From contig NIVC01001632.1 of the NCBI GenBank assembly GCA_002269645.1, positions 62,001 to 126,000 of the forward strand: 64,000 nucleotides of DNA, given 5' to 3'. This document shows, piece after piece, positions 17,418 to 62,369 of the stretch (its first letter is position 1; every line of letters begins with the position of its first letter). The stretch comes from Macrostomum lignano (Eukaryota). The notes under the pieces were generated by a model. It did no database searches and had not been told where the DNA came from. It saw only the letters and a program-made list of their open reading frames with translations. The position numbers and the translations under genes are program-made.

Positions 17418-17822
17418 TGTATATAGTGCATTGTATTTGGTGAGTGAAGCGAGTAAAGTAGAGATGTTTATAAAGTAGACAAAAATGTGTAACACACAAA
17501 AAAGGTCATTTATTGTCGCAAAGCCTAGAAAACCTAGCATAAGTTCCTAGGACCTTGGCGTACATTTTAGTATGAAGTGGCATAGATTTTTTAGGGGACT
17601 TTTTCCTCGGCATATATTATAACATGATCCTGACTATGGTTAGAATAGTATATAATATATTATTTACAAGATGTAGACTGCCATGTAGGCAATTAAAACA
17701 TTAGGTAGATGGCTACTATATATATAAACACAAATCATGTTTTGGCAAGGTTTTTGGTAAATTTTAGCAAAAATGTTTTTTTAACAAATCATTTCATATT
17801 GACTTTCTTTAAATGCATCATG

Positions 17823-18693
17823 GGCGATTTTCCTCTTTCGTTCGTTAAATTATTTTTTCGATTTGAATCGGTGCGTAGAGGCGAAAAAGTGACGTGGCAG
17901 CATTTGAAATTGTGCCTATTGAAAAAATGATGTGGCAGTAGTGGAAAGGACATGGGGTTGCTGCTGACACATGTCTATGGCACTACTCACCTACTCGGTT
18001 CGTGGCGGAGTATAGGCAGCAGCTTGCACTCGCTCCTTGCTCCCCTTCCCACTCTCGCATGAGCTTTGACTTATCGCATTGAGTCTTCACTTGTTAAATT
18101 TTATTAAATTTTACTCAAACTGCAACATGGCTGGGCGCCCAGCGGCACCTACATTCATCGTCCCTCCTGGACAACTGCGTCCCTCGCTGGAGCTGTGCGA
18201 CATAAACTTTACGATGCGCGAGCTGGCCAACATCACCCAGATGCCTAGAGACTGCATCAACTGGATGGCAACCTTCCATCTTCTGGCCAACCAACAGACA
18301 TGCTCAACATGCCCCGGAGCCCCGGCGATGCGTCTGCAGCAGCGCACGGGTGATCGCTTTGTGGACAGGCTTGCTTGGGCATGTACCGGCTGCCATGGCC
18401 AGGTCTCCATAAGAAAGGGCTCTTTGCTGGGGCTCCAGTTGAACCATATTGGACTTTGTGAGACTCTCTGTATGCCAGAGCAAGCTACGGGACGCAGTGC
18501 CCTATTGTTGTCGTTTACTGTCGTTACATGTCGTTTACCATTACCGTTTGTCTTTAGTTAAACAACTCCATCCAACTTTCCGAGAAAAATTTAAGTCCCA
18601 GCATCCCATTACTGTCGTTTTCTGACATTACTCAGTAGTCACAACTTGTTTCTGTCGAAAAAATAATTTAACGAATGAAAGAGGAAAATCGCC
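17823..18693 (+). mobile_element. Internally deleted Merlin DNA transposon, copy 2
   Basis: Same TIRs and TSD GCATCATG (17815-17822 / 18694-18701); one ACG>ATG difference in the ORF remnant. Confidence 0.85.
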
Positions 18694-21307
18694 GCATCAT
18701 GCATTAAACTTTACTAAATATAAAATTTTCTTTACCTTTGCCTAAAATATTTATAAAATATAACTTAATATTTAGATAATTTAGGACATATTATTACTCT
18801 TATTAATTTTAGCAGAACTTACCTGAGTAATTTCAGAAATTGACTGCTTTAAAGTCTTTTTGTTAAGGGAACCAACCAAATTTTCTATTTGGTTTAATGC
18901 AAATTGCAGAGAGTCTAGCATTGTTGATAGTAAATGCTTTGTAGGGCTAAACAGTAATAGTTTGATGCTAGTAACATGTCAAATGACAATTTTGACAATC
19001 AAAGCACAATTTAATGTTTTAAGTAAGAATTGTCAGACTACTAGGCTAGTATAGTGTAGGACTTGCTACACCTCTAACTTTATTCAAGTTCAACTTGACA
19101 GCAAAAAAAAGGGGGGCTAATGTTTCTCAAAGAATGCAGAAAGTAAAGGGTATTTTTATTAGTATTCAGTCTGTATCTCTTGCTATTTTAAAAATTATAT
19201 TAGTAACTAGGGCTAAGCCTATTTTCGAGTACTAGTCTACTGTATTTAGGCCTATATAAATATATTGTGATTAAAAAATTAAGACATCTTAAATATCACC
19301 TAATGAGTACTCAGAAAAAAAGATTTATTCATTGTTCACCATTCAGGTAATCATGTCAATCATTATTCTGTTATTCTGTTATTTACTGTCAATATTGACT
19401 GGCTTTAGAAGCTTGAAAACTGTAGATATTAATAAATAAATATTTATAACATATTTTTTGTCTTATAAGAAATTGTGTTTTTACTTTAAATTAAAACCGA
19501 CACCAAAAACAATAAAAAACTTTGATATAATGCGACAATTTGAGTCACGCTTTTTTTAAATAATCGTGCTTGTCGATGACTAATGTAAAAACTATGTTAC
19601 AAATATAAATATTTATCACGATTGTCTCTATAACCAAATTCTTCGAGTATGAAGTCGGCCCACACCCCAGAGTGGCTAAAACGAAATCAAAGACGAAAAA
19701 TATCAACAAGATGGGCCCACTCAGTGGGCCCGGCCATAAAGTCTTGATCCAATAGAACTACGCATTTTGCTGAAAATGATTAAATGCAACGATTTTTTAT
19801 GCATGCAGAATCACTGCAGATTTTTCATGGAAGTAACAATGCAAAGCAGTGAAGCATGCAGCTATGACTGAGAGGGTCATGGTTACCATTACCGCCCTGA
19901 TGTCCCTGCAGTTGTTAAGTTCCATGCAATCAGCCGCGGTGGGCGGGGGAGTGACAGCTGGAACAGCAGCTCAGGAGGTGGGCCGTTAGCCCATACACCT
20001 TTCCCTATGCTTAGATGTAACCCACTGCAGTTAATCCAAGTGCAGGGTGACAACGGCGGTATGGGTGGGAGCAGGGAGCCATGAGGATCCCGATCACTGG
20101 TCGAGCAATCTCGGCCAGGCCATTGGCCAGCTCGTGGCCTCGGAATGGCCCGACTTCCCCTGGGAGCCACCTTAAAGACACCCTGTTGGGGGCGCCCTAA
20201 GCGGTTAGCAGGCACCATGGCACACTTGCTTTTTTCTTTTACATGGATACATGTATTTTCTTACCCTCTCCAATTAACATTTCGCTAGGTGAGCCGTTTT
20301 GCTGGTTGTCCATGTCCCATCCAGGTCATGCAATCTCACCCACACTTGTTCCGTTACATATTGTCGACGTCAACCCAAGCGCGTCACGATTAGTTTAGAT
20401 GAAGATGATCTGTCCATCTGAATGTAAACTACATGTACATGTAGTTCATGTGGTTCATATTATACATACTGTATATACCGTATGTTTCATAGACAAATGA
20501 AATAGAAATAGAAATAACCAAGACGTTAATTGCCATTGCAGCAAAGCGAGTACTATATGTACATATAGTCAATAGTGTGTTGTTTAAATTTCTGACAGAA
20601 TAGATTTCGCTAACCTCCCATTATTATTTGCAAAAAATACAGACAGTAAAAATAAATTACGAGTAATATCCGTACGTAAAGCTTTACCAGTTTTTTAAGT
20701 AACTCCGCGTAATTTACCGATCTTTCTTACAAATTACTCGTACATACGATCCTACATGGTAGATAAGAAACGCATAATTTTTGGCATATTGGAAATTTAA
20801 AAGTTAAATTACTAAACTCTCGATCATTAGCTCCAATGAGTTCCGTATCATTTTGAGTTGCCGGGTGAATGGGGATGTCATCTTAAGCGCCGGCATAATG
20901 CTTTCATCCGGCCCTTAGAAGGGCAGAAAGAGTCAAAAGCAATTCAACTGAATAGTTGAATCTATTCACAGTTTCGTGTAGCGCGCTGTAGTATCTATTT
21001 TCTACCTAAGTACACTCGTATATAAAGTCTTTCTATCTTACACGCTGGAAAGTGAAAGTACTTCTACAAACATACGTGTAAACTTATTGAAATCATAGAA
21101 AGAACTGGAGATAGTGGCCAACTATTTAATACTCGTACATGTAGGCGTTCATTGAAATCGTATCTTGGGATCATTACTTGTTTTGTCCTTTATACATTTC
21201 TGTACATAAGGAAGAGAAATACAAGAAATGTCCGTGGCGATTTGACCGTTGTGCAGCTCAAAGTGAAAAACTGACCACCGCAAGTTTTACTCATACTCTC
21301 CGCGACG

Positions 21308-22662
21308 CTACTCCTCATCATCTCCTCCTCCAGTTTCTTCGATCATCGGCTCAGGTTCGTCACGGTCCGACTCCGCTCCGACTGATGCTTCATCAGCCGG
21401 CTCGTCGGCGTCCACTTCTTCTTCGAAGTCATCGTCATCGGGCTCATCGCTTGCAAAATCGTCATCGGCTGTATCGTCGTCGTCGGAAACCGCTAAGCTA
21501 CTTTGACGAGAGGAGACTGGGGAACGCTCATCCTGCAGTGGCTCGTCTGGTTGGTTGGTTGGTTGGTTGGTTGGTTGGTTGGTTGGTTGGTTGGTTGGTT
21601 GGTTGGTTGGTTGGTTGGTTGGTTGGTTGGTTGGTTGGTTGGTTGGTTGGTTGGTTTGTTTGTTGGTTGGTTGTTGGTTGGTTGGTTGGTTGGTTGGTTG
21701 GTTTGGTTGTTGGTTGGTTGGTTGGTTGGTTGGTTGGTTGGTTGGTTGGTTGGTTGTTTGTTGGTTGGTTATTTGGTTGGTTGGTTGGTTGGTTGGTTGG
21801 TTGGTTGGTTGGTTATTTGGTTGGTTGGTTGGTTGGTTGGTTGGTTGGTTGGTTGGTTGGTTGGTTTTGGTTGGTTGGTTGGTTGGTTGGTTGGTTGGTT
21901 GTTGGTTGGTTGGTTGGTTGGTTGGTGGTTGGTTGGTTGGTTGGTTGGTTGGTTGGTTGGTTGGTTTGTTGGTTGGTTATTTGGTTGGTTGATCCAAAAA
22001 ATCAAATCAAATCTCGATAGCTAACCTCGGTTGGCATTGGCATCATCGTGGTCCGGATCGCCCATCCCATCCACACCCATGTTCTCCAGCTCCTCGCGTC
22101 GTTCTTCGCGTCTCTCTCGCTCTCGCCGACGCTCCTCCTGCAACTCCATATTGTCGTTCATGACTTCCAGCGCTTCGTTTTCCATTCGGTAGAGCCAAGC
22201 TTCGCGCTCACGGTCAGTCAGCCGGTGATCATCGTCCCCGTCCAGAACCTGCGCAGCTAGCTGGCCTCGAGCGAAGGCCGCTTGTCTGAAAGAAATTTGA
22301 ATTTGAGTACGAGCGTATCACCTAATGCAATTATTATCAATAGTTGACCAGCGCACTATAAAAAATTGACAAGGAGGGATGTTTGCGGCATCTGCAACGC
22401 TTCCAAACCTATAACAATTTACATGAACAGAAACATACTTTTGAAACCAACATTGACTTCATATGAGTCACTGAAAGAGGATAGGCTACCTGTCACCGTC
22501 TGCAAAGTAAGCTTGCTGAGCCTCATCAGCACCAAGCTGTCCGTTAACCTCCAGTAGGCTGTGCCGTCGCTTGCTGCTCTCCAGAAATGCCACCAACTCT
22601 TCGCGTTTCGACTCGCGTTTAGCCAATTCTCGCTGACGCATTTTGTCCACAGTATTTCCCAT
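21308..22662 (-). CDS. Three-exon acidic orphan gene, copy 2
   Basis: Exons 22662-22490, 22285-22026, 21546-21308; same splice sites as copy 1. Confidence 0.8.
21548..21991. repeat. (TTGG)n microsatellite, copy 2
   Basis: Direct reading; longer than copy 1, with a different interruption pattern. Confidence 0.97.
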
Positions 22663-24176
22663 TTGTGCGGCTGAAACTTGAAGCAGTACTAACTGGGCAA
22701 CAGACAGCAATTGTGAGGAAAGACCCGAGGACTCCAGAAATTGCGTATCGTTTTAGCTATTTGAAAGCACCCTGACAAAGTTGAATTTTTGTTTATGTTT
22801 AATACGCAGCAGAATCGGTTGGTGGCGTGGTGTCGGTCAAGTCAGGCTTTGGTATAGCTGGATAGTTGCAATTAAACAAACTTAACAACCCCCACCCCTT
22901 ACTTGCAAGCGCGTTGTCCAGGGTTCAACAGCCAACCTTGCAACACTTGGTGGTGACGAAAAATGCGAGCAAACTTTCAGCTAGTTTGAATAAATCACTG
23001 AAACTTGCATTTAGGTTAGATCTTGGGGCTTAATTCCTGTTTAAGGTAGTCCTGGTAGCTCTCTGTAGCAGCACAGCAGAAAAAGGTAAAGCAGTTTCGT
23101 TGGGATGAAAGAAAATTACTTAAACTCTTCTTGATGAAAGAGTTAAGCGGGGTGCAACTATATTTTGATAATAGCCATCTAAGATTAACCTAACTGGGGC
23201 CTACGACAATTTACGAGTACCATCAATAATTTGATTGTCATCAATTGACTGCTGAACCTACTAGCCCTATCCTATATTTGTTCTAAACCCTAACCTAAAT
23301 TCTCGGCAAGTTAATTTATGCATGGCAGTCATGCAATTGTCGCGCTCCCCATTTACTATGCGGTAGGTCTGATCGATTGACTAGTGAAAGTAGCATTTAG
23401 GGCATTTCATATACATTGTTTTATTACTTTACCAATCGAAATGCTGATTTGTTACGTAGTTAACCAACACGGAAGTGCTGGTCACGTACTTTCCATTTCC
23501 CGTCATTGATATCAACCCCTAACCGGAGACAATACATTGCATTGATTAATGATCAATCATCAAACTCTTGTTTGCAGGGTGTTCGCTCACAACACATTTT
23601 TCTGCTGAAACTTCGGGTTCTTTCTGCGATGAAAGGAATTAAACAAGCGTAGTTCTCACGGTTCCATACAATTTTTTATCCTGCGACACCCGTCTGTAGA
23701 GCATTCGCCAAACAGCATATTGTCTGCCGCTTGGTCTTGTCAAATTATATTATATTAAATAATATTAAAGCTCTCGCTGGGCAATGCAGACTCTGACCCT
23801 ACAGTTTGGCATTGTGGCATTTCGCTTGGACGAAAGATACTGTAATTTGAGACAGACTGGAAATGGGCAAGGCAGATCAGAGTCTACCCCACTGCGATAA
23901 ACTGGTTAATTGAAGCATCTCCCTGCCAGCTGCGCGCGTTTTTTCTTCATCGTTTAAAACCCTTGCCTAGGTGCGCAAGGTGAATTGAAGTAAAGACCAC
24001 CCCAGAACGCCTTGCCCGAGCCTTAGCAACCTGAGCCACCTGCGCGGGCTCTTTTTTGAAGTAATTTATGCAGAAAAGAAGAGCTAAAAAAGCAAATCAA
24101 CATTTCCACTGAAAAAAAGCAGAGAGATTAACAGACCAGCAACCAGAGCGTAGAAAATCAAGATCGAAACGGCAAG

Positions 24177-25040
24177 ATGACGAGTCAAGAAGCTGAGAAT
24201 CAGAATCGTGAAGACGAAGAAGCGAAAGCGATGCATCGAGAAGAAGAAAAAGCAGAGCATCAGGGAGACGAGGACGTGGAGCACCAAGGAGACGAGGATG
24301 CAGAGCATCAGGGAGACGAGGACGTGGAGCACCAAGGAGACGAGGATGCAGAGCATCAGGGAGACGAGGATGCAGAGCATCAGGGAGACGAGGATGCAGA
24401 GCATCAGGGAGACGAGGATGCAGAGCATCAGGGAGACGAGGATGCAGAGCACCAGGGAGACGAGGATGCAGAGCGCCAGGGAGACGAGGATGCACAGCAC
24501 CAAGGAGACGAGGATGCAGAGCGCCAAGGAGACGAGGATGCAGAGCATCTGGAAAAAGAGGCTTCAAAGCACCATAAAGAAGAGAATGCGGAGCGCAAGG
24601 AAGAAGACGATATGAAGCACCGGGAAGCGGAGTTTGTGAAACGCCACGAAGACAGTGATAACAGAAAGCAGCTAGAGCACAAAAAGGAGCAAGACATAAA
24701 GCTACCAACAATGAAAGTAGAGGTCCGAGAAGCTTTTCAGGATGATGACAACTCGGAAGAGAAGAAGTGCAATGAATTTCAACAATCGGATTCAACTCCA
24801 ACGTGGCAACAATCTAAGCAACTGCCTCCTTTGCGCAGCTACGTGTTGTCGAAACGAAGTGGCAAGACTGGTCGGCAAGATCAGCAGAAGCTGGCACCAA
24901 ATCGGGTGATGATGGAGGCAGCTCAGCTGCTGCCAAAACTTCGACATTCTCGTCCCGGCATCGGATATTACGGACGGGTGCGCGGGCAAGCCGCGAACAG
25001 GTCTGTTGACCTGCGGTCGAGTCACGAACCGGCAGGTCAG
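24177..25040 (+). CDS. Acidic EHQGDEDA-repeat protein exon, copy 2
   Basis: Identical translation; donor at 25040/25041. Candidate terminal exon starts at 26760 after aaaattcag. Confidence 0.55.
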
Positions 25041-25233
25041 GTAAGTGGCGGATGGCTTTGTGGCGATTACACATGCTCTGAAATCAGAGTAAAATTGGTA
25101 ATTCAATCTAATCCTACTGCCCACAAAAGTAGCACACTATCACATCATAGAAATCGACAATGACACTATGCAGTACACATTGTCACGTAAAAGTACGGAG
25201 TGACTCATTCCAACTATTCATATGAGCGTAGAC

Positions 25234-26750
25234 CACAGCAATCGGAGTGACACTCTCCAAAATTAACCACACTCACAACACAGCAATCGGAGTGACACTC
25301 TCCAAATGCACCACACTCCGCGACACAGCAATCGGAGTGAACACTCTCCAAATGCACCACACTCACAACACAGCAATCGGAGTGAACACTCTCCAAATGC
25401 ACCACACTCGCGACACAGCAATCGGAGTGACACTCTCCAAATACACCACACTCACGACACAGCAATGGGAGTGACACTCTCCAAATGCACCACACTCGCG
25501 ACACAGCAATCGGAGTGAACACTCTCCAAATGCACCACACTCACGACACAGCAATCGGAGTGAACACTCTCCAAATTCACCACACTCGCGACACAGCAAT
25601 CGGAGTGACACTCTCCAAATACACCACACTCACGACACAGCAATCGGAGTGACACTCTCCAAATACACCACACTCACAACACAGCAATGGGAGTGACACT
25701 CTCCAAATGCACCACACTCGCGACACAGCAATCGGAGTGAACACTCTCCAAATGCACCACACTCACGACACAGCAATCGGAGTGAACACTCTCCAAATTC
25801 ACCACACTCGCGACACAGCAATCGGAGTGACACTCTCCAAATACACCACACTCACGACACAGCAATCGGAGTGACACTCTCCAAATACACCACACTCACG
25901 ACACAGCAATCGGAGTGAACACTCTCCAAATGCACCACACTCGCGACACAGCAATCGAGTGACACTCTCCAAATACACCACACTCACGACACAGCAATCG
26001 GAGTGACACTCTCCAAATGCACCACACTCGCGACACAGCAATCGGAGTGAACACTCTCCAAATGCACCACACTCACAACACAGCAATCGGAGTGAACACT
26101 CTCCAAATGCACCACACTCGCGACACAGCAATCGGAGTGACACTCTCCAAATACACCACACTCACAACACAGCAATGGGAGTGACACTCTCCAAATGCAC
26201 CACACTCGCGACACAGCAATCGGAGTGAACACTCTCCAAATGCACCACACTCACGACACAGCAATCGGTGAACACTCTCCAAATTCACCACACTCGCGAC
26301 ACAGCAATCGGAGTGACACTCTCCAAATTCACCACACTCGCGACACAGCAATCGGAGTGACACTCTCCAAATACACCACACTCACGACACAGCAATCGGA
26401 GTGACACTCTCCAAATACACCATCACAACACAGCAATGGGAGTGACACTCTCCAAATGCACACAGCAATCGGAGTGAACACTCTCCAAATGCACCACACT
26501 CACGACACAGCAATCGGAGTGAACACTCTCCAAATTCACCACACTCGCGACACAGCAATCGGAGTGACACTCTCCAAATACACCACACTCACGACACAGC
26601 AATCGGAGTGACACTCTCCAAATACACCACACTCACGACACAGCAATCGGAGTGAACACTCTCCAAATGCACCACACTCGCGACACAGCAATCGGAGTGA
26701 CACTCCTCCAAATACACCACACTCACGACACAGCAATCGGAGTGACACTC
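25234..26750. repeat. 44/45-bp satellite, block 2
   Basis: Same unit as 15987-17417. Confidence 0.95.
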
Positions 26751-33980: not shown

Positions 33981-36900
33981 TTGTGGAACTGTTGGGTGGA
34001 ATAAACATCGGAATAGAAGGGGTCAGGACCATAGACAAAGCTCCTTTGTGAAACTGTTGGGTGGAATAAACATCGGAATAGAAGGGGTCAGGACCATAGA
34101 CAAAGCTCCTTTGTGGAACTGTTGGGTGGAATAAACATCGGAATAGAAGGGGTCAGGACCATAGACAAAGCTCCTTTGTGAAACTGTTGGGTGGAATAAA
34201 CATCGGAATAGAAGGGGTCAGGACCATAGACAAAGCTCCTTTGTGGAACTGTTAGGTGGAATAAACATCGGAATAGAAGGGGCCAGGACCATAGACAAAG
34301 CTCCTTTGTGAAACTGTTGGGTGGAATAAACATCGGAATAGAAGGGGTCAGGACCATAGACAAAGCTCCTTTGTGGAACTGTTGGGTGGAATAAACATCG
34401 GAATAGAAGGGGTCAGGACCATAGACAAAGCTCCTTTGTGAAACTGTTGGGTGGAATAAACATCGGAATAGAAGGGGTCAGGACCATAGACAAAGCTCCT
34501 TTGTGGAACTGTTGGTGGAATAAACATCGGAATAGAAGGGGCCAGGACCATAGACAAAGCTCCTTTGTGGAACTGTTTGGTGGAATAAACATCGGAATAG
34601 AAGGGGTCAGGACCATAGACAAAGCTCCTTTGTGGAACTGTTTGGTGGAATAAACATCGGAATAGAAGGGGCCAGGACCATAGACAAAGCTCCTTTGTGG
34701 AACTGTTGGGTGGAATAAACATCGGAATAGAAGGGGTCAGGACCATAGACAAAGCTCCTTTGTGGAACTGTTGGGTGGAATAAACATCGGAATAGAAGGG
34801 GTCAGGACCATAGACAAAGCTCCTTTGTGGAACTGTTGGGTGGAATAAACATCGGAATAGAAGGGGTCAGGACCATAGACAAAGCTCCTTTGTGGAACTG
34901 TTTGGTGGAATAAACATCGGAATAGAAGGGGTCAGGACCATAGACAAAGCTCCTTTGTGGAACTGTTGGGTGGAATAAACATCGGAATAGAAGGGGTCAG
35001 GACCATAGACAAAGCTCCTTTGTGGAACTATTTGGTGGAATAAACATCGGAATAGAAGGGGTCAGGACCATAGACAAAGCTCCTTTGTGGAACTGTTGGG
35101 TGGAATAAACATCGGAATAGAAGGGGTCAGGACCATAGACAAAGCTCCTTTGTGGAACTGTTGGGTGGAATAAACATCGGAATAGAAGGGGTCAGGACCA
35201 TAGACAAAGCTCCTTTGTGGAACTGTTGGGTGGAATAAACATCGGAATAGAAGGGGTCAGGACCATAGACAAAGCTCCTTTGTGGAACTGTTGGGTGGAA
35301 TAAACATCGGAATAGAAGGGGTCAGGACCATAGACAAAGCTCCTTTGTGGAACTGTTGGGTGGAATAAACATCGGAATAGAAGGGGTCAGGACCATAGAC
35401 AAAGCTCCTTTGTGAACTGTTGGGTGGAATAAACATCGGAATAGAAGGGGTCAGGACCATAGACAAAGCTCCTTTGTGGAACTGTTGGGTGGAATAAACA
35501 TCGGAATAGAAGGGGTCAGGACCATAGACAAAGCTCCTTTGTGGAACTGTTTGGTGGAATAAACATCGGAATAGAAGGGGTCAGGACCATAGACAAAGCT
35601 CCTTTGTGGAACTGTTGGGTGGAATAAACATCGGAATAGAAGGGGTCAGGACCATAGACAAAGCTCCTTTGTGGAACTGTTGGGTGGAATAAACATCGGA
35701 ATAGAAGGGGTCAGGACCATAGACAAAGCTCCTTTGTGGAACTGTTGGGTGGAATAAACATCGGAATAGAAGGGGTCAGGACCATAGACAAAGCTCCTTT
35801 GTGGAACTGTTTGGTGGAATAAACATCGGAATAGAAGGGGTCAGGACCATAGACAAAGCTCCTTTGTGGAACTGTTGGGTGGAATAAACATCGGAATAGA
35901 AGGGGTCAGGACCATAGACAAAGCTCCTTTGTGGAACTGTTTGGTGGAATAAACATCGGAATAGAAGGGGTCAGGACCATAGACAAAGCTCCTTTGTGGA
36001 ACTGTTGGGTGGAATAAACATCGGAATAGAAGGGGTCAGGACCATAGACAAAGCTCCTTTGTGGAACTGTTGGGTGGAATAAACATCGGAATAGAAGGGG
36101 TCAGGACCATAGACAAAGCTCCTTTGTGGAACTGTTGGGTGGAATAAACATCGGAATAGAAGGGGTCAGGACCATAGACAAAGCTCCTTTGTGGAACTGT
36201 TGGGTGGAATAAACATCGGAATAGAAGGGGTCAGGACCATAGACAAAGCTCCTTTGTGGAACTGTTGGTGGAATAAACATCGGAATAGAAGGGGTCAGGA
36301 CCATAGACAAAGCTCCTTTGTGGAACTGTTGGGTGGAATAAACATCGGAATAGAAGGGGTCAGGACCATAGACAAAGCTCCTTTGTGGAACTGTTGGGTG
36401 GAATAAACATCGGAATAGAAGGGGTCAGGACCATAGACAAAGCTCCTTTGTGGAACTGTTGGGTGGAATAAACATCGGAATAGAAGGGGTCAGGACCATA
36501 GACAAAGCTCCTTTGTGGAACTGTTGGGTGGAATAAACATCGGAATAGAAGGGGTCAGGACCATAGACAAAGCTCCTTTGTGGAACTGTTGGGTGGAATA
36601 AACATCGAATAGAAGGGGTCAGGACCATAGACAAAGCTCCTTTGTGGAACTGTTGGGTGGAATAAACATCGGAATAGAAGGGGTCAGGACCATAGACAAA
36701 GCTCCTTTGTGGAACTGTTGGTGGAATAAACATCGGAATAGAAGGGGTCAGGACCATAGACAAAGCTCCTTTGTGGAACTGTTGGGTGGAATAAACATCG
36801 GAATAGAAGGGGTCAGGACCATAGACAAAGCTCCTTTGTGGAACTGTTGGGTGGAATAAACATCGGAATAGAAGGGGTCAGGACCATAGACAAAGCTCCT

Positions 36901-39900
36901 TTGTGGAACTGTTGGGTGGAATAAACATCGGAATAGAAGGGGTCAGGACCATAGACAAAGCTCCTTTGTGGAACTGTTGGTGGAATAAACATCGGAATAG
37001 AAGGGGTCAGGACCATAGACAAAGCTCCTTTGTGGAACTGTTGGGTGGAATAAACATCGGAATAGAAGGGGTCAGGACCATAGACAAAGCTCCTTTGTGG
37101 AACTGTTGGGTGGAATAAACATCGGAATAGAAGGGGTCAGGACCATAGACAAAGCTCCTTTGTGGAACTGTTGGTGGAATAAACATCGGAATAGAAGGGG
37201 TCAGGACCATAGACAAAGCTCCTTTGTGGAACTGTTGGGTGGAATAAACATCGGAATAGAAGGGGTCAGGACCATAGACAAAGCTCCTTTGTGGAACTGT
37301 TGGGTGGAATAAACATCGGAATAGAAGGGGTCAGGACCATAGACAAAGCTCCTTTGTGGAACTGTTGGGTGGAATAAACATCGGAATAGAAGGGGTCAGG
37401 ACCATAGACAAAGCTCCTTTGTGGAACTGTTGGGTGGAATAAACATCGGAATAGAAGGGGTCAGGACCATAGACAAAGCTCCTTTGTGGAACTGTTGGGT
37501 GGAATAAACATCGGAATAGAAGGGGTCAGGACCATAGACAAAGCTCCTTTGTGGAACTGTTGGGTGGAATAAACATCGGAATAGAAGGGGTCAGGACCAT
37601 AGACAAAGCTCCTTTGTGGAACTGTTGGGTGGAATAAACATCGGAATAGAAGGGGTCAGGACCATAGACAAAGCTCCTTTGTGGAACTGTTGGGTGGAAT
37701 AAACATCGGAATAGAAGGGGTCAGGACCATAGACAAAGCTCCTTTGTGGAACTGTTGGGTGGAATAAACATCGGAATAGAAGGGGTCAGGACCATAGACA
37801 AAGCTCCTTTGTGGAACTGTTGGGTGGAATAAACATCGGAATAGAAGGGGTCAGGACCATAGACAAAGCTCCTTTGTGGAACTGTTGGGTGGAATAAACA
37901 TCGGAATAGAAGGGGTCAGGACCATAGACAAAGCTCCTTTGTGGAACTGTTGGGTGGAATAAACATCGGAATAGAAGGGGTCAGGACCATAGACAAAGCT
38001 CCTTTGTGGAACTGTTGGGTGGAATAAACATCGGAATAGAAGGGGTCAGGACCATAGACAAAGCTCCTTTGTGGAACTGTTGGGTGGAATAAACATCGGA
38101 ATAGAAGGGGTCAGGACCATAGACAAAGCTCCTTTGTGGAACTGTTGGGTGGAATAAACATCGGAATAGAAGGGGTCAGGACCATAGACAAAGCTCCTTT
38201 GTGGAACTGTTGGGTGGAATAAACATCGGAATAGAAGGGGTCAGGACCATAGACAAAGCTCCTTTGTGGAACTGTTGGGTGGAATAAACATCGGAATAGA
38301 AGGGGTCAGGACCATAGACAAAGCTCCTTTGTGGAACTGTTGGGTGGAATAAACATCGGAATAGAAGGGGTCAGGACCATAGACAAAGCTCCTTTGTGGA
38401 ACTGTTGGTGGAATAAACATCGGAATAGAAGGGGTCAGGACCATAGACAAAGCTCCTTTGTGGAACTGTTGGGTGGAATAAACATCGGAATAGAAGGGGT
38501 CAGGACCATAGACAAAGCTCCTTTGTGGAACTGTTGGGTGGAATAAACATCGGAATAGAAGGGGTCAGGACCATAGACAAAGCTCCTTTGTGGAACTGTT
38601 GGGTGGAATAAACATCGGAATAGAAGGGGTCAGGACCATAGACAAAGCTCCTTTGTGGAACTGTTGGGTGGAATAAACATCGGAATAGAAGGGGTCAGGA
38701 CCATAGACAAAGCTCCTTTGTGGAACTGTTGGGTGGAATAAACATCGGAATAGAAGGGGTCAGGACCATAGACAAAGCTCCTTTGTGGAACTGTTGGGTG
38801 GAATAAACATCGGAATAGAAGGGGTCAGGACCATAGACAAAGCTCCTTTGTGGAACTGTTGGGTGGAATAAACATCGGAATAGAAGGGGTCAGGACCATA
38901 GACAAAGCTCCTTTGTGGAACTGTTGGGTGGAATAAACATCGGAATAGAAGGGGTCAGGACCATAGACAAAGCTCCTTTGTGGAACTGTTGGGTGGAATA
39001 AACATCGGAATAGAAGGGGTCAGGACCATAGACAAAGCTCCTTTGTGGAACTGTTGGGTGGAATAAACATCGGAATAGAAGGGGTCAGGACCATAGACAA
39101 AGCTCCTTTGTGGAACTGTTGGGTGGAATAAACATCGGAATAGAAGGGGTCAGGACCATAGACAAAGCTCCTTTGTGGAACTGTTGGGTGGAATAAACAT
39201 CGGAATAGAAGGGGTCAGGACCATAGACAAAGCTCCTTTGTGGAACTGTTGGGTGGAATAAACATCGGAATAGAAGGGGTCAGGACCATAGACAAAGCTC
39301 CTTTGTGGAACTGTTGGGTGGAATAAACATCGGAATAGAAGGGGTCAGGACCATAGACAAAGCTCCTTTGTGGAACTGTTGGGTGGAATAAACATCGGAA
39401 TAGAAGGGGTCAGGACCATAGACAAAGCTCCTTTGTGGAACTGTTGGGTGGAATAAACATCGGAATAGAAGGGGTCAGGACCATAGACAAAGCTCCTTTG
39501 TGGAACTGTTGGGTGGAATAAACATCGGAATAGAAGGGGTCAGGACCATAGACAAAGCTCCTTTGTGGAACTGTTGGGTGGAATAAACATCGGAATAGAA
39601 GGGGTCAGGACCATAGACAAAGCTCCTTTGTGGAACTGTTGGGTGGAATAAACATCGGAATAGAAGGGGTCAGGACCATAGACAAAGCTCCTTTGTGGAA
39701 CTGTTGGGTGGAATAAACATCGGAATAGAAGGGGTCAGGACCATAGACAAAGCTCCTTTGTGGAACTGTTGGGTGGAATAAACATCGGAATAGAAGGGGT
39801 CAGGACCATAGACAAAGCTCCTTTGTGGAACTGTTGGGTGGAATAAACATCGGAATAGAAGGGGTCAGGACCATAGACAAAGCTCCTTTGTGGAACTGTT

Positions 39901-42900
39901 GGGTGGAATAAACATCGGAATAGAAGGGGTCAGGACCATAGACAAAGCTCCTTTGTGGAACTGTTGGGTGGAATAAACATCGGAATAGAAGGGGTCAGGA
40001 CCATAGACAAAGCTCCTTTGTGGAACTGTTGGGTGGAATAAACATCGGAATAGAAGGGGTCAGGACCATAGACAAAGCTCCTTTGTGGAACTGTTGGGTG
40101 GAATAAACATCGGAATAGAAGGGGTCAGGACCATAGACAAAGCTCCTTTGTGGAACTGTTGGGTGGAATAAACATCGGAATAGAAGGGGTCAGGACCATA
40201 GACAAAGCTCCTTTGTGGAACTGTTGGGTGGAATAAACATCGGAATAGAAGGGGTCAGGACCATAGACAAAGCTCCTTTGTGGAACTGTTGGGTGGAATA
40301 AACATCGGAATAGAAGGGGTCAGGACCATAGACAAAGCTCCTTTGTGGAACTGTTGGGTGGAATAAACATCGGAATAGAAGGGGTCAGGACCATAGACAA
40401 AGCTCCTTTGTGGAACTGTTGGGTGGAATAAACATCGGAATAGAAGGGGTCAGGACCATAGACAAAGCTCCTTTGTGGAACTGTTGGGTGGAATAAACAT
40501 CGGAATAGAAGGGGTCAGGACCATAGACAAAGCTCCTTTGTGGAACTGTTGGGTGGAATAAACATCGGAATAGAAGGGGTCAGGACCATAGACAAAGCTC
40601 CTTTGTGGAACTGTTGGGTGGAATAAACATCGGAATAGAAGGGGTCAGGACCATAGACAAAGCTCCTTTGTGGAACTGTTGGGTGGAATAAACATCGGAA
40701 TAGAAGGGGTCAGGACCATAGACAAAGCTCCTTTGTGGAACTGTTGGGTGGAATAAACATCGGAATAGAAGGGGTCAGGACCATAGACAAAGCTCCTTTG
40801 TGGAACTGTTGGGTGGAATAAACATCGGAATAGAAGGGGTCAGGACCATAGACAAAGCTCCTTTGTGGAACTGTTGGGTGGAATAAACATCGGAATAGAA
40901 GGGGTCAGGACCATAGACAAAGCTCCTTTGTGGAACTGTTGGGTGGAATAAACATCGGAATAGAAGGGGTCAGGACCATAGACAAAGCTCCTTTGTGGAA
41001 CTGTTGGGTGGAATAAACATCGGAATAGAAGGGGTCAGGACCATAGACAAAGCTCCTTTGTGGAACTGTTGGGTGGAATAAACATCGGAATAGAAGGGGT
41101 CAGGACCATAGACAAAGCTCCTTTGTGGAACTGTTGGGTGGAATAAACATCGGAATAGAAGGGGTCAGGACCATAGACAAAGCTCCTTTGTGGAACTGTT
41201 GGGTGGAATAAACATCGGAATAGAAGGGGTCAGGACCATAGACAAAGCTCCTTTGTGGAACTGTTGGGTGGAATAAACATCGGAATAGAAGGGGTCAGGA
41301 CCATAGACAAAGCTCCTTTGTGGAACTGTTGGGTGGAATAAACATCGGAATAGAAGGGGTCAGGACCATAGACAAAGCTCCTTTGTGGAACTGTTGGGTG
41401 GAATAAACATCGGAATAGAAGGGGTCAGGACCATAGACAAAGCTCCTTTGTGGAACTGTTGGGTGGAATAAACATCGGAATAGAAGGGGTCAGGACCATA
41501 GACAAAGCTCCTTTGTGGAACTGTTGGGTGGAATAAACATCGGAATAGAAGGGGTCAGGACCATAGACAAAGCTCCTTTGTGGAACTGTTGGGTGGAATA
41601 AACATCGGAATAGAAGGGGTCAGGACCATAGACAAAGCTCCTTTGTGGAACTGTTGGGTGGAATAAACATCGGAATAGAAGGGGTCAGGACCATAGACAA
41701 AGCTCCTTTGTGGAACTGTTGGGTGGAATAAACATCGGAATAGAAGGGGTCAGGACCATAGACAAAGCTCCTTTGTGGAACTGTTGGGTGGAATAAACAT
41801 CGGAATAGAAGGGGTCAGGACCATAGACAAAGCTCCTTTGTGGAACTGTTGGGTGGAATAAACATCGGAATAGAAGGGGTCAGGACCATAGACAAAGCTC
41901 CTTTGTGGAACTGTTGGGTGGAATAAACATCGGAATAGAAGGGGTCAGGACCATAGACAAAGCTCCTTTGTGGAACTGTTGGGTGGAATAAACATCGGAA
42001 TAGAAGGGGTCAGGACCATAGACAAAGCTCCTTTGTGGAACTGTTGGGTGGAATAAACATCGGAATAGAAGGGGTCAGGACCATAGACAAAGCTCCTTTG
42101 TGGAACTGTTGGGTGGAATAAACATCGGAATAGAAGGGGTCAGGACCATAGACAAAGCTCCTTTGTGGAACTGTTGGGTGGAATAAACATCGGAATAGAA
42201 GGGGTCAGGACCATAGACAAAGCTCCTTTGTGGAACTGTTGGGTGGAATAAACATCGGAATAGAAGGGGTCAGGACCATAGACAAAGCTCCTTTGTGGAA
42301 CTGTTGGGTGGAATAAACATCGGAATAGAAGGGGTCAGGACCATAGACAAAGCTCCTTTGTGGAACTGTTGGGTGGAATAAACATCGGAATAGAAGGGGT
42401 CAGGACCATAGACAAAGCTCCTTTGTGGAACTGTTGGGTGGAATAAACATCGGAATAGAAGGGGTCAGGACCATAGACAAAGCTCCTTTGTGGAACTGTT
42501 GGGTGGAATAAACATCGGAATAGAAGGGGTCAGGACCATAGACAAAGCTCCTTTGTGGAACTGTTGGGTGGAATAAACATCGGAATAGAAGGGGTCAGGA
42601 CCATAGACAAAGCTCCTTTGTGGAACTGTTGGGTGGAATAAACATCGGAATAGAAGGGGTCAGGACCATAGACAAAGCTCCTTTGTGGAACTGTTGGGTG
42701 GAATAAACATCGGAATAGAAGGGGTCAGGACCATAGACAAAGCTCCTTTGTGGAACTGTTGGGTGGAATAAACATCGGAATAGAAGGGGTCAGGACCATA
42801 GACAAAGCTCCTTTGTGGAACTGTTGGGTGGAATAAACATCGGAATAGAAGGGGTCAGGACCATAGACAAAGCTCCTTTGTGGAACTGTTGGGTGGAATA

Positions 42901-45884
42901 AACATCGGAATAGAAGGGGTCAGGACCATAGACAAAGCTCCTTTGTGGAACTGTTGGGTGGAATAAACATCGGAATAGAAGGGGTCAGGACCATAGACAA
43001 AGCTCCTTTGTGGAACTGTTGGGTGGAATAAACATCGGAATAGAAGGGGTCAGGACCATAGACAAAGCTCCTTTGTGGAACTGTTGGGTGGAATAAACAT
43101 CGGAATAGAAGGGGTCAGGACCATAGACAAAGCTCCTTTGTGGAACTGTTGGGTGGAATAAACATCGGAATAGAAGGGGTCAGGACCATAGACAAAGCTC
43201 CTTTGTGGAACTGTTGGGTGGAATAAACATCGGAATAGAAGGGGTCAGGACCATAGACAAAGCTCCTTTGTGGAACTGTTGGGTGGAATAAACATCGGAA
43301 TAGAAGGGGTCAGGACCATAGACAAAGCTCCTTTGTGGAACTGTTGGGTGGAATAAACATCGGAATAGAAGGGGTCAGGACCATAGACAAAGCTCCTTTG
43401 TGGAACTGTTGGTGGAATAAACATCGGAATAGAAGGGGTCAGGACCATAGACAAAGCTCCTTTGTGGAACTGTTGGGTGGAATAAACATCGGAATAGAAG
43501 GGGTCAGGACCATAGACAAAGCTCCTTTGTGGAACTGTTGGGTGGAATAAACATCGGAATAGAAGGGGTCAGGACCATAGACAAAGCTCCTTTGTGGAAC
43601 TGTTGGGTGGAATAAACATCGGAATAGAAGGGGTCAGGACCATAGACAAAGCTCCTTTGTGGAACTGTTGGGTGGAATAAACATCGGAATAGAAGGGGTC
43701 AGGACCATAGACAAAGCTCCTTTGTGGAACTGTTGGGTGGAATAAACATCGGAATAGAAGGGGTCAGGACCATAGACAAAGCTCCTTTGTGGAACTGTTG
43801 GGTGGAATAAACATCGGAATAGAAGGGGTCAGGACCATAGACAAAGCTCCTTTGTGGAACTGTTGGGTGGAATAAACATCGGAATAGAAGGGGTCAGGAC
43901 CATAGACAAAGCTCCTTTGTGGAACTGTTGGGTGGAATAAACATCGGAATAGAAGGGGTCAGGACCATAGACAAAGCTCCTTTGTGGAACTGTTGGGTGG
44001 AATAAACATCGGAATAGAAGGGGTCAGGACCATAGACAAAGCTCCTTTGTGGAACTGTTGGGTGGAATAAACATCGGAATAGAAGGGGTCAGGACCATAG
44101 ACAAAGCTCCTTTGTGGAACTGTTGGGTGGAATAAACATCGGAATAGAAGGGGTCAGGACCATAGACAAAGCTCCTTTGTGGAACTGTTGGGTGGAATAA
44201 ACATCGGAATAGAAGGGGTCAGGACCATAGACAAAGCTCCTTTGTGGAACTGTTGGGTGGAATAAACATCGGAATAGAAGGGGTCAGGACCATAGACAAA
44301 GCTCCTTTGTGGAACTGTTGGGTGGAATAAACATCGGAATAGAAGGGGTCAGGACCATAGACAAAGCTCCTTTGTGGAACTGTTGGTGGAATAAACATCG
44401 GAATAGAAGGGGTCAGGACCATAGACAAAGCTCCTTTGTGGAACTGTTGGGTGGAATAAACATCGGAATAGAAGGGGTCAGGACCATAGACAAAGCTCCT
44501 TTGTGGAACTGTTGGGTGGAATAAACATCGGAATAGAAGGGGTCAGGACCATAGACAAAGCTCCTTTGTGGAACTGTTGGTGGAATAAACATCGGAATAG
44601 AAGGGGTCAGGACCATAGACAAAGCTCCTTTGTGGAACTGTTGGGTGGAATAAACATCGGAATAGAAGGGGTCAGGACCATAGACAAAGCTCCTTTGTGG
44701 AACTGTTGGGTGGAATAAACATCGGAATAGAAGGGGTCAGGACCATAGACAAAGCTCCTTTGTGGAACTGTTGGGTGGAATAAACATCGGAATAGAAGGG
44801 GTCAGGACCATAGACAAAGCTCCTTTGTGGAACTGTTGGGTGGAATAAACATCGGAATAGAAGGGGTCAGGACCATAGACAAAGCTCCTTTGTGGAACTG
44901 TTGGGTGGAATAAACATCGGAATAGAAGGGGTCAGGACCATAGACAAAGCTCCTTTGTGGAACTGTTGGGTGGAATAAACATCGGAATAGAAGGGGTCAG
45001 GACCATAGACAAAGCTCCTTTGTGGAACTGTTGGGTGGAATAAACATCGGAATAGAAGGGGTCAGGACCATAGACAAAGCTCCTTTGTGGAACTGTTGGG
45101 TGGAATAAACATCGGAATAGAAGGGGTCAGGACCATAGACAAAGCTCCTTTGTGGAACTGTTGGTGGAATAAACATCGGAATAGAAGGGGTCAGGACCAT
45201 AGACAAAGCTCCTTTGTGGAACTGTTGGGTGGAATAAACATCGGAATAGAAGGGGTCAGGACCATAGACAAAGCTCCTTTGTGGAACTGTTGGGTGGAAT
45301 AAACATCGGAATAGAAGGGGTCAGGACCATAGACAAAGCTCCTTTGTGGAACTGTTGGGTGGAATAAACATCGGAATAGAAGGGGTCAGGACCATAGACA
45401 AAGCTCCTTTGTGGAACTGTTGGGTGGAATAAACATCGGAATAGAAGGGGTCAGGACCATAGACAAAGCTCCTTTGTGGAACTGTTGGGTGGAATAAACA
45501 TCGGAATAGAAGGGGTCAGGACCATAGACAAAGCTCCTTTGTGGAACTGTTGGGTGGAATAAACATCGGAATAGAAGGGGTCAGGACCATAGACAAAGCT
45601 CCTTTGTGGAACTGTTGGTGGAATAAACATCGGAATAGAAGGGGTCAGGACCATAGACAAAGCTCCTTTGTGGAACTGTTGGGTGGAATAAACATCGGAA
45701 TAGAAGGGGTCAGGACCATAGACAAAGCTCCTTTGTGGAACTGTTGGGTGGAATAAACATCGGAATAGAAGGGGTCAGGACCATAGACAAAGCTCCTTTG
45801 TGGAACTATTTGGTGGAATAAACATCGGAATAGAAGGGGTCAGGACCATAGACAAAGCTCCTTTGTGGAACTGTTGGGTGGAAT
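33981..45884. repeat. 65-bp satellite array, ~183 copies (~11.9 kb)
   Basis: Unit gtggaactgttgggtggaataaacatcggaatagaaggggtcaggaccatagacaaagctccttt; essentially invariant centre, with variant units at the left and right edges. Confidence 0.99.
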
Positions 45885-52611: not shown

Positions 52612-53039
52612 AGCTGATGAGAGATCGCTGCTAGCCCCGCTCGCAGACTCTCAGCTTTCAATTCGTTTCTCTTCGCCAAAGTTCAGCAGCAACGGGTTTC
52701 TCAGTCATTTTCATTTTAGTATCCTTGTCAGGCCTCAAACTAATAGAGACACATTACCCTTGATTTGGTGAGGAGCTGCTTGCTCAACCGTGTTAAATAT
52801 TGTAAAAAAACCATGAACCATGCTATTAGGTTCATGCCATTAGACCATTAGGCAATTCAGGGATATTTTCATTTCATTGTGTTGCTTTCGTAGTTGCTTT
52901 AGAGTGGTTTTAAATTCCATGGTTATTATAAATTGTTCGGAGAAGACAGCCGAATGACCAACCAAAAAAATCCTCCCAGAACCTTGAGAACGGGCCAGTC
53001 AACTATAATCAACAATAGACCAGAGAAAAAGACAACCAT

Positions 53040-57824: not shown

Positions 57825-58847
57825 ATGCCAACTTTGACCCCTCAACAAACATCCATCCGCCCTCTGAGCAGCCGGTCGCGTCTCCCGAGTCTCGCCGGCG
57901 CCGTCTCGTGTCTCAGCCGGCAGCCCAGCCGGCTCTGGTCCACCGGCCCGCCGGACCGACCGCCCTGCGTCATCGGCGAGGGCGCATTCGGCCGCGTACT
58001 TCGCGGCACTTTCAAAGGCCAGCCAGCGGCCATTAAAGAGGTCGGCGAACGGCCGAATGCGCGTCGACGCTGGCGCGGACCCGGCGACAGTCCAGATCAT
58101 GACTATCGGCGGGAGATTCGCGGCGCCGAGTTCCTACTGAAGCTCAGCCACGAAAACGTGGTCCGCTACCTGCACTTTGACAGCAGCAGCGAGCCCGGCC
58201 TGCTGTACGTTGTCATGGAGCTGATCGACGGCCGGAATCTCGCTGAGTTGAGACGGAAAGGGCCCTTCAGCGAAGACGATTTGCGATCGCTCATGACTCA
58301 GGTGAGTAAAAATCGTTCTCACTCGGCTTGGATGTTTTGGAGTTTAGACCCCAATCAGCAACCAAGCTTTATCTTTCAACCCTGTTAGACCTGCTGCGGC
58401 TTGCACTACCTGCACAGCCGGCAGCCGTCAATCATTCACCGCGACGTCAAGGGCTCCAACATCATGCTGTCGAGCCGGGACAACGTGGCCAAAATCGTTG
58501 ACCTCGGCCTGGCGGTCCAGGGCGCGCCAGCTGTCAGCCACTCGCTGGCTGGCACGCATCGCTTCATGGCGCCAGAGGTCTACGAGACCCGGGCTTACTC
58601 CACCAAGTCTGACGTGTTCGCTCTGGGCTGCGCCCTCTTCGAGTTGCAGTGCGGCCAGCCACCTCACTCGGACAAGTCCAACGGGATGGCCGTCTGTTAC
58701 GCGGTGATGTACAGCCCGATGCCTCGGCTGCCTGATGGTTGTAATCGCCGACTGGTGGACTTTTACGATCGGTGCACCAGAAAAGACCCGATTGAGCGGC
58801 CAACTGCTAAAGAGCTGCTGGGACACACCTTTCTGGTTGGAGCTTGA
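57825..58847 (+). CDS. Ser/Thr protein kinase (compact, 2 exons; MAP3K/TKL-like mix of motifs)
   Basis: Exons 57825-58301 and 58389-58847 (phase 0, GTGAGT..TAG). Motifs GEGAFG, AIK, E(alphaC), HENVVRY, HRDVKGSN, DLG, GTHRFMAPE, SDVFALG, ERPTAKELLGH. Confidence 0.92.
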
Positions 58848-58880
58848 TTCTATCATTCTCAAACCGGGAATGTTGCCACC

Positions 58881-59365: not shown

Positions 59366-59850
59366 GAGAAGGTTAACCAAAACTGCACAAAGTACCTACT
59401 GCTGACACCTGTGATGTCACTGATTTGCTCAATTTCGCATGCATCAACAAATTTAACCACAGATTTTTTAATTGGAACTAATTGAAACTTTTTGGCCCGT
59501 TCTTTACATCCAGCTTTGAAAGGCAATAAAAGCAAGCCAAGACAATCTGCATTTTCCACTGCAGGCTTTTCAATTTTTTTGTAAAAATGTAAATATATTC
59601 CTAAATGAAGATTGTTAAACAGATTTTCTATATAGAGACCGTTTGATTTTTTCTTCTAATTCAACTTTTGAACAACTAGCAATCATTTGAAGCTCTAACT
59701 ATTCCCAGAAATTTCCATACCTGTGCGTAATACTCTACTACTACTATTGACCAATAAGTAGGCAGAACTGTTGTTTATTTTGTACTTTGCCCGAAAAGAA
59801 CCGCATTCGAAAAAACACAGTCCGGGAAAACTCATCCCTCAAAAGTTCTC

Positions 59851-60085
59851 TCAAGAATTGCGCGCCGCCTTGACAGCCTTGGCAATTTTGCCAACAACCT
59901 TGGCAGTTCTGATCACCATACCGAAGAGGCCTCTCTCCCCTGTCAGGGCGGACGCGTCCACGTCGGACATGGCCCGCATAGCGGCCAAGTTCTCAGCCTC
60001 CTCCTGGTTTGAGTCGCTATTGGTTGGGAGCGGCCGCGGCCAGGGCTGCGCAGAGCAGAAATCCGAGAGCGAGCTGCCACTTCAT
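59851..60085 (-). CDS. Putative antimicrobial/cytolytic peptide precursor (signal + acidic propiece + cationic amphipathic helix), with one +1 frameshift in a C3 run
   Basis: Removing one base from the GGG at 60026-60028 gives MKWQLALGFLLCAALAAAAPTNSDSNQEEAENLAAMRAMSDVDASALTGER-GLFGMVIRTAKVVGKIAKAVKAARNS* (77 aa). AATAAA lies ~70 nt after the stop (+ strand tttatt 59774-59779). Confidence 0.7.
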
Positions 60086-60591
60086 GATTGAGTCTGTTGG
60101 GCTGCCTGCTGATGAAGCTGAGAGTCTGCGATTGAGCTGGCTGAATTGTCTGCATTTATGCTCAAAATTCGGCACGTTTTTCCTGAGCTTGGAATGCTCT
60201 GTTTGACCTCGACACTTTCACGTGTTAAGGACTTGACATTTATTGCACTTTACAGCAATTTAATGGCCAAGCAGTGTCAATCTTAGCTAGGTAAACTTTG
60301 CTCAAAATCTACTCAATAGACTGTTTGATGAAGCTGCCACTGTCTCACTATTTGCCCTATCTAAAGTTAGTTCCAGCCCAAGCGTTGTTGTATGCACTAC
60401 TTTATTAACGAATACGTTTGAGGCAGAAGTTAAACAAATAATTTTTTCTACAATAGGATTGTAACATTAACAACTAAATTAGAAGGACGTTATTCATTGG
60501 ACACATACACGAAATTCATTGGAAAATTTATCATTGCAATAGGATGTTGTCACCTTTTATGGGCACTGTAGCGCCGAGTGCAAAAAATTCA

Positions 60592-61492: not shown

Positions 61493-61621
61493 TCAGTTGG
61501 CGATGGCGTGGGCGACTTTTTTGATGTTCCTGATGACGCGTACCACCTTCCTGATGCGGATGCCCTTCTTGGCCAGAGTCTGTTGCTGGGCGAGCTGATG
61601 AACCTGAGAGTCTGCGATTGA
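61493..61621 (-). CDS. Second cationic amphipathic peptide locus (KK-GIRIRKVVRVIRNIKKVAHAIAN*); paralog of 59851-60085, 5' structure unresolved
   Basis: Mature-like peptide at 61564-61493. The 46-nt segment 61576-61621 matches 60090-60135 at 39/46. AATAAA ~90 nt after the stop (61397-61402). No adjacent signal/propiece; possibly a deletion derivative or differently spliced. Confidence 0.55.
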   Translation of the reverse strand, partial: SIADSQVHQLAQQQTLAKKGIRIRKVVRVIRNIKKVAHAIAN

Positions 61622-62369
61622 CTTTCTTGGACTTTGGCAACGAACTTGTTTGTACTTTTGTGTTGGGCAAAGAGTGATTGATACTTTCTCACACAATTCA
61701 TTGTTTACCTCACCTTCATTGTGATTGCCCTGCCTCAGTTTTTGTGTTACCTGACGGTTCTGCGTAAAAGCAATCAGAGCAAACGTAAGTTTATGTCTCT
61801 GGAAGTCAATGGATAAAGTCACTATAAGATTGAGTACAATCATGTTATTACGTTTATATCTCAAAGCAGTTTTTCGACGGTGTGACTTCTAAGACTACCT
61901 ACCAATTTCTTTGTAGCAACAATAATTTGTATCTTGATTGATATTCAACCCATGTCTAACCAGAAATGATCCAAGAAGTTCATCTATACGACCCAACATG
62001 ACCATGCACCTTTTTGCTTTTCATCTCGTAGGTATACGAGCTACTTTTTTACGTGAAGCTTTGCTAGCAACTCAGGTGCTTGCATAGATTTGTGCACAGT
62101 TTGCGTCAAAATTCAGAAATTTAACGGAAGGAAGCTTTTCCGTCTCGTAAATTTTATTAGAAAAGGCACAGATTGCAGTTTCACAGCACATTCCACTGCA
62201 TTATGCAGGCTTCTGAGCCGCCCACAGCCACGAGACGAGTGCCTTCTGATAGGAATTTCAAGCTGGAAATTTTGCACGGACCGTGGAACACTCGAAATTG
62301 AGCCTGCGGAAAGCGAAAACGTTTGTAGCGATGACACGCATGCTTGCATCAATCCTTGCAGCTATGATC

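Follow-up and report, generated by a model that had tools for sequence, protein, structure and literature searches.

In the frog dermaseptin/brevinin superfamily, a conserved signal and acidic propiece precede a basic cleavage site and hypervariable cationic peptides, which come from many paralogs and are frequently amidated at a C-terminal Gly. In the taxon-restricted Hydra arminins, a signal is followed by an anionic N-terminal region and, at the C-terminus, a cationic peptide. In the piscidins and pleurocidins, the propiece comes after the mature peptide. Neuropeptide precursors typically conserve the peptide and vary the spacer.

Irvine et al. (2023, PLoS Pathog, PMC10414684) report that the classical AMP groups of lophotrochozoans are missing from flatworms. 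In the S5 File of that in silico screen, BOX15_Mlig024774g1/g2 is fAMP-LP-142, with a signal peptide (Y), one propeptide site, 100% of the AMP predictors positive and the peptide FRWRKAIR[IV]AGKVAKAVL (PMC10414684). This group was removed at the 'Same genome' step, before testing (PMC10414684). Two further entries, fAMP-LP-116 and the ungrouped 544, are other members of the family described below (PMC10414684). The authors thus did not see the family as a single one, and their screen spread it over three or more groups that look unrelated, of which two were discarded as single-genome and one as ungrouped.

Here, we examine a locus at 59774–60177 of the window, which is the whole 64-kb stretch of DNA that was analysed. 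It is one copy of a Macrostomum-specific, tandemly clustered, intronless gene family. Its parts (locus 1) and those of a neighbouring relic (locus 2) are listed in the order of their reading.

61493–61625, minus strand: second family relic (locus 2), from leader identity, translation and the AKK junction
60154–60177, minus strand: core-promoter motif ACGTGCC-N9-GCATAAAT, from a pattern scan, with a TATA-like box at 60161–60154
60086–60135, minus strand: conserved untranslated 5′ leader reaching the ATG, from DNA identity to the L005 copies and locus 2
60029–60085, minus strand: start codon and signal-peptide coding segment MKWQLALGFLLCAALAAAA in frame A, from translation and family HMM positions 1–22
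60004–60028, minus strand: frame-broken linker, made of the Pro codon CCC (60028–60026) and 22 nt (60025–60004), from alignment A4 and the HMM frame switch
59932–60027, minus strand: acidic propiece PTNSDSNQEEAENLAAMRAMSDVDASALTGER in frame B, net charge −5, from translation and family HMM positions 23–49
59854–59931, minus strand: predicted mature cationic peptide GLFGMVIRTAKVVGKIAKAVKAARNS, net charge +6, from translation
59851–59853, minus strand: stop codon TGA in frame B, from translation
59774–59779, minus strand: polyadenylation signal AATAAA, 70 nt after the stop

A first-pass annotation had read this locus as an antimicrobial-type precursor hidden by a frameshift of one base, and the sequence elements that it described are all reproduced. 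The minus-strand ATG (60085–60083) opens a signal-like segment, in which 17 uncharged and mostly hydrophobic residues come after the Lys at position 2, and direct translation of frame A as assembled gives an ORF of 22 residues, MKWQLALGFLLCAALAAAAPNQ, closed by TAG at 60019–60017. Frame B (+1) stays open from 60081 to the TGA. The propiece holds 7 D/E and 2 R, and the cationic 26-mer has its basic residues at positions 8, 11, 15, 18, 21 and 24 with no acidic residue. AATAAA follows 3′ of the stop, at 59779–59774 as read on this strand.

The window is eukaryotic DNA in which tandem repeats are very abundant. A satellite of 11.9 kb (33981–45884) has a 65-bp unit in ~183 copies with 99% matches, and minisatellites have units of 29 bp at 2795, 44 bp at 15987/25234, 67 bp at 31446, 35 bp at 53050, 41 bp at 62372 and 15 bp at 58876. 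A tandem segmental duplication of ~9.2 kb (8198–17417 and 17424–26647) at 99.4% identity carries the 44-bp minisatellite and duplicated ORFs. One of these, of 160 aa (8853–9335 and 18079–18561, plus strand), contains a Cys-rich CxxC...CxxC segment with a weak DnaJ_CXXCXGXG match under the Pfam cut-off and may be a mobile-element remnant. Shared repeats are 76–90% identical. Together with the named relatives of the peptide, which are all from M. lignano, they place the source in Macrostomum, as M. lignano itself or a near congener. An exact look-up of one window ORF found no record.

Two other coding features stand out. A protein kinase gene (57825–58847, plus strand) is convergent with the peptide gene, and its clean 87-nt GT..AG intron (58302–58388) splits Pfam Pkinase positions 7–109 and 111–263. 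A single exon of 256 codons (883–1653, minus strand) encodes the CNOT1 N-terminal domain (PF22940), with its best relatives in a Logan contig (47%) and the coral Desmophyllum pertusum (42%). The protein search returned no close CNOT1 relative from M. lignano or another species. The Rfam scan of the window gave no match.

With its frame restored, the precursor is a 77-mer. A word-indexed protein search with it found no match and its relatives were found by exhaustive phmmer alone, which returned three among 1.84 billion representative proteins at E values of 2.6e-6 to 1.9e-5. The alignments cover residues 1–50 and so cross the frame break. Two of the three come from GCA_002269645.1 (NIVC01...), that is, Macrostomum lignano Mlig_3_7. 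A profile search extended the family to 19 members, one of them a Logan run sequence and the other 18 all M. lignano hypothetical proteins (BOX15_Mlig... or equivalent).

A family HMM was built without the window copy and run on all 2375 stop-to-stop segments of the window. Its best match among them is frame A at 60085–60020, covering HMM positions 1–22 at 37.3 bits. The second best is frame B, covering positions 23–49 at 10.6 bits, which is weak alone with an E value of 0.06 within the window. The frame changes between HMM positions 22 and 23 and the two matches are exactly collinear, so both frames derive from a single ancestral gene. The earlier joining of the two frames into one precursor is thereby upheld, by the collinear HMM matches as well as by the phmmer alignments across the break.

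A window packed with low-complexity repeats yields many spurious ORFs, and two short ones might be juxtaposed by chance within such repeat-rich DNA. However, both frames match one protein family in order and the family-specific promoter and leader are present at the locus, so that we exclude the chance pairing with near certainty. We place the window locus in a Macrostomum prepropeptide family as a new member, probably a pseudogenised one.

This family, which is unnamed and which we refer to by its MKWQLALGLLLC motif, takes in fAMP-LP-116, -142 and -544. Its plan is a signal MKWQ[LIF]ALGLLLCAALAVAVP, an acidic propiece (...EEKAEAMAVLEALSNVDESS.SEE...), usually KK, and a highly variable cationic tail. 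Mean pairwise identity falls from 86% in the signal to 57% in the propiece and 37% in the tail. Against the family signal form MKWQ[LIF]ALGLLLCAALA.A.P the window copy reads MKWQLALGFLLCAALAAAAP, at 81% mean identity to the family signals. Against the propiece core, EE.AEAM.ALEAL-like, it reads QEEAENLAAMRAM in the +1 frame, with the weak score given above.

The tails range from 7 to 33 residues and include alternating R/hydrophobic strands, Pro-Arg repeats and long helices. The short ones (FVRVRVRL-G, WLRVRARVRI-G, IFRVRVRI-G, FVRVHVRF-G and FIHIHF-G) are amphipathic at beta-strand periodicity, with moments of 1.3–1.45 at 170–180 degrees. The P0005 tail is a Pro-Arg repeat, and among the long tails (WRIKSACKIFRRLLHLARKCYAKKG, WLLRRIRIRWRRVLRVASRVYRIYRYLPIGK and WRRRRRFRWRKAIRVAGKVAKAVL being examples) several are amphipathic helices. 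KK precedes most tails, and Gly is the last residue in 13 of 18. Both are missing from the window copy, which has GER before the tail and a C-terminus of ...AARNS; the terminal Gly is also absent from P0005, P0010 and P0015.

The propiece and tail charges are balanced over the 18 members (r = −0.72, kinship among the paralogs being ignored). The correlation rises to r = −0.91, with kinship again ignored, when P0006 with its internal propiece duplication is left out. The window copy, at −5 and +6, falls on this trend.

The family fits no Pfam family, as judged by hmmscan (E ≤ 1) of the repaired precursor and six paralogs. A single at-threshold match, on the internally duplicated P0006, was judged spurious. 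With all 18 named relatives from M. lignano, the suggestion that the peptide is lineage-specific is supported. The suggestion that annotation would miss it fails for the family, which is visible to annotation because its intact paralogs are annotated in GenBank. So far they are annotated merely as hypothetical proteins and partly flagged in a supplementary table.

At the DNA level, we examined 13 genomic copies (L002 two, L003, L004, L005 two, L006 five, L007 and L008). All are single-exon and in frame through the signal and the propiece, and 20 kb of L006 hold five of them. Since the M. lignano gene models were built on an RNA-seq-guided transcriptome assembly, and the start of many of the family's entries falls within the 5′ leader, we conclude that the paralogs are transcribed.

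In the 64-kb window, the pattern ACGTGNC-N6-14-GCATAAAT has a single match, at 60154–60177, where 0 were expected. It also occurs upstream of the family genes, one per copy, at L002 (2086 and 4896), L003 (400), L005 (10323 and 14198) and L006 (616, 4462, 9951, 17637 and 20049). The strict pattern was not found at the L004, L007 and L008 copies. GCATAAAT is invariant in alignment A4, and the fuller motif is (GGAAA)AACGTGNC, then GCATAAAT after 6–14 nt. It may be a shared regulatory element adjoining the TATA-like box.

The leader and signal DNA (60025–60131, 107 nt) is 87–89% identical to both M. lignano L005 copies, which encode the same 80-aa protein as BOX15_Mlig024774g1/g2. Beyond this stretch, the window copy and L005 are too diverged for blastn. 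Within the window, the leader motif CAGACTCTCAGNTTCATCAG is present at locus 1 and locus 2 only. A third leader-like 17-mer at 52641–52657 does not extend and was dropped. No synteny was found between the window and the M. lignano family loci.

The family loci show rearrangements of their own. The closest paralog occurs twice in L005, inverted and 4 kb apart (9967–10206, minus strand, and 14312–14551, plus strand), and the GenBank model P0015 (BOX15_Mlig026085g2, 127 aa) is a chimera of the antisense of one L005 copy joined to the other. At L006 10940–10967 (plus strand), a solo family promoter and leader start are followed by unrelated sequence with an inverted repeat, making a promoter-only relic within the five-copy M. 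lignano cluster. BOX15_Mlig001477g4, an entry of PMC10414684 S5, is likewise a truncated copy that reads through a leader into a full one.

The frame break itself was assigned by the first-pass annotation to an extra C in a run of three. The net offset of +1 agrees with this claim, but the place does not. The run, CCC at 60028–60026, is an invariant Pro codon in five aligned intact homologs (alignment A4) and the next A.C is also invariant, so an extra C within it is unlikely. From the Pro codon to the conserved GAGGAGGCTGAG, the linker measures 22 nt here (60025–60004) against 18 nt in L003 and L004, again net +1, and where the window copy has TAG, the P0003-type genes have a GAG codon in the alignment. 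The extra base is thus probably 3′ of the CCC run, as far as the alignment can place it. Removing any one base in 60017–60028 restores the frame and gives, for example, APNH-SDSNQEE, resembling the RPNH of P0005.

An intron in place of a frameshift was rejected, since the junction is without GT and all 13 paralog copies are intronless. In the proposed course of events, the window copy would have gained a net +1 nt in the linker just past the signal, leading to TAG at codon 23. With TAG there, the locus can make only MKWQLALGFLLCAALAAAAPNQ as assembled.

A dead copy adjoins locus 1. Locus 2 lies 1.5 kb upstream of locus 1, and its leader is 85% identical to that of locus 1 over 46 nt. From the family 5′ leader the sequence passes directly into ...LAKK, GIRIRKVVRVIRNIKKVAHAIAN and TGA, while the ATG, the signal, the propiece and the promoter motif are all absent. 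In the family, the propiece likewise meets the tail at AKK. The locus 2 tail is a strongly amphipathic one (moment 0.82, P = 0.006).

We lean, with modest confidence, towards the window copy being a young pseudogene in a decaying two-copy cluster. A pseudogene is likelier than the hidden active gene that was first proposed because only a 22-residue product is available as assembled and the second dead relic adjoins. Locus 2 is an independent dead copy, and in the window copy the KK site is lost and the ALEAL motif has become AMRAM. The kinase gene (~330 codons, with its 87-nt intron) and the CNOT1 exon (256 codons) are free of frame errors. Family relics exist in M. lignano too, the solo promoter of L006 being one. 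Against the pseudogene reading, 58 codons stay open after the shift and the peptide still looks functional, which equally fits an intact gene.

The gene may instead be intact in the animal, encoding a functional 77-residue secreted prepropeptide, with the extra base being either an indel from assembly or sequencing or a variant carried by one haplotype. Its promoter motif, leader, ATG, 58 open codons, stop and AATAAA are all undamaged, and the 13 paralog copies at other loci are all in frame. Long-read assemblies are prone to indel errors at short homopolymers, and the candidate sites are such runs (CCC, AA, CC and AA). However, these runs are merely 2–3 nt, and the same assembly shows no frame error in the neighbouring kinase and CNOT1 coding sequences. 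Besides, the family KK site and the ALEAL motif are also gone, the adjoining locus 2 is clearly dead, and neither of the two protein libraries searched contains an intact protein with the tail of the window copy. On balance, we consider an intact gene unlikely.

Alternatively, translation could bypass the break. Ribosomes might shift by +1 at CAA-TAG-C, or they might reinitiate past the 22-codon ORF, at the in-frame ATG of ...AAMRAM.... Antizyme-type frameshifts occur at a stop codon, and here the offset is +1 with the stop exactly at the frame junction. However, such a site is absent from all 13 intact paralog copies and is thus no trait of the family, and we know of no stimulatory element for a shift at CAA-TAG-C. 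The reinitiation product, for its part, would be signal-less. A bypass is thus highly improbable.

The 26-mer was first said to carry its basic residues on one helical face, and this stands only in part. From the single sequence, AlphaFold2 models the tail as one continuous helix (pLDDT 88–95), and the propiece is predicted to be helical too. The six basic residues are spread over 340, 280, 320, 260, 200 and 140 degrees, and so drift around the wheel instead of lining one face. The alpha-helical hydrophobic moment is modest, at 0.30 overall and 0.51 in the best 18-mer (P about 0.1–0.2 relative to shuffles), with a peak of 0.56 at 110 degrees.

The architecture of signal, anionic propiece and cationic peptide is borne out and is shared by the whole family. 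A sequence kinship to cecropins, dermaseptins or pleurocidins is not, with no match in Pfam (E ≤ 1) or the PDB; phmmer of the 26-mer against the PDB sequences returned nothing at E ≤ 10. With its conserved signal (86%), hypervariable tails (37%) and balanced charges, the family behaves like host-defence peptides in its pattern of sequence variation. It looks antimicrobial-like, and antimicrobial or cytolytic activity is putative for every member.

In intact members, the signal would direct entry into the secretory pathway, and the acidic propiece would offset the charge of the cationic tail proportionately. The tail would be freed by a cut at the basic site, KK in most members and GER here, and the terminal Gly of most paralog tails may be an amidation signal. 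The freed tail would then act on membranes in the manner of host-defence peptides, the one encoded here being a predicted 26-residue helix of charge +6.

The main functional rival, because of the KK and the terminal Gly, is that these tails are amidated signalling peptides; a reproductive, adhesive or prey-directed role would be another way for the family to be non-antimicrobial. The prohormone signature of a dibasic site and then a C-terminal Gly is shown by 13 of 18 members, and some tails would end in RF-, RL- or RI-amide (e.g. FVRVRVRL-G and FVRVHVRF-G). However, conservation lies in the signal and the propiece while the tail is hypervariable (7–33 residues, several types), the reverse of what neuropeptide precursors usually show. 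Likewise, the propiece charge tracks the tail charge, tandem copies are many, and AMP predictors give 73–100% for several members. A literature search on the family gene IDs and on Macrostomum neuropeptides found nothing specific. We hold a non-antimicrobial role to be rather doubtful.

We prefer the host-defence reading for the family in general terms, and put forward only tentatively, at somewhat less than even chance, that it is a genuine host-defence peptide superfamily private to Macrostomum. If so, it would be the first expanded AMP gene family of a free-living flatworm, with tail diversity built on a fixed cassette of promoter, leader, signal and propiece. The tails would span amidated (V/I-R)n beta-strand octamers, Pro-Arg repeats and long helices, and the family would also supply very short natural cationic peptides. 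Its turnover would proceed by frameshift and leader-mediated deletion, as in the two dead copies of the window.

Since the family is multi-copy, transcribed and charge-balanced in the transgenic-ready M. lignano, and the classical AMP families are reported absent, it would offer a tractable entry to flatworm innate immunity. The window locus itself is of lesser weight because it is probably dead. Its value is in having brought the family to light and in showing how genes arise and die within it.

Among the known systems, fAMP-LP-142 is a true homolog. Its leader and signal DNA has the identity to the window copy given above for L005, 18 of its first 20 residues (the 19-residue signal and the invariant Pro) are identical, and it follows the same signal, propiece and tail plan. 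The tail segment IRVAGKVAKAV of fAMP-LP-142 and P0015 also resembles IRTAKVVGKIAKAV of the window copy. However, fAMP-LP-142 is intact and transcribed and has an Arg-rich N-terminal tail segment, WRRRRRFRWRK, whereas the window copy is frame-broken and without a dibasic site, of KK or Arg-run type, before its tail.

The amidated neuropeptide prohormones, such as the flatworm FMRFamide-like ones, share the signal, the spacer, KK and the C-terminal Gly with most of the paralogs, but not the last two with the window copy. Moreover, the Macrostomum precursors hold a single C-terminal peptide, and it is the peptide that varies and the spacer that is conserved.

The cecropins (PF00272) and the pleurocidin/piscidin-type peptides (PF08107) are likewise linear, cationic and helical, of similar size and charge, but neither is matched in the Pfam and PDB sequences. 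Unlike in the piscidins and pleurocidins, the acidic propiece of the window copy stands before the mature peptide. The Hydra arminins also combine a fixed secretory cassette with a variable cationic cargo, but they belong to another organism and showed no homology in the search of 1.84e9 proteins.

The frog-skin dermaseptins and brevinins (PF03032, FSAP_sig_propep) follow the same prepropeptide logic as the Macrostomum family. They differ in that PF03032 gives no match at E ≤ 1, the phylum is another and the Macrostomum coding sequences are intronless. Judged from these sequence comparisons, the resemblance is convergence on a common prepropeptide logic and not membership in the frog superfamily.
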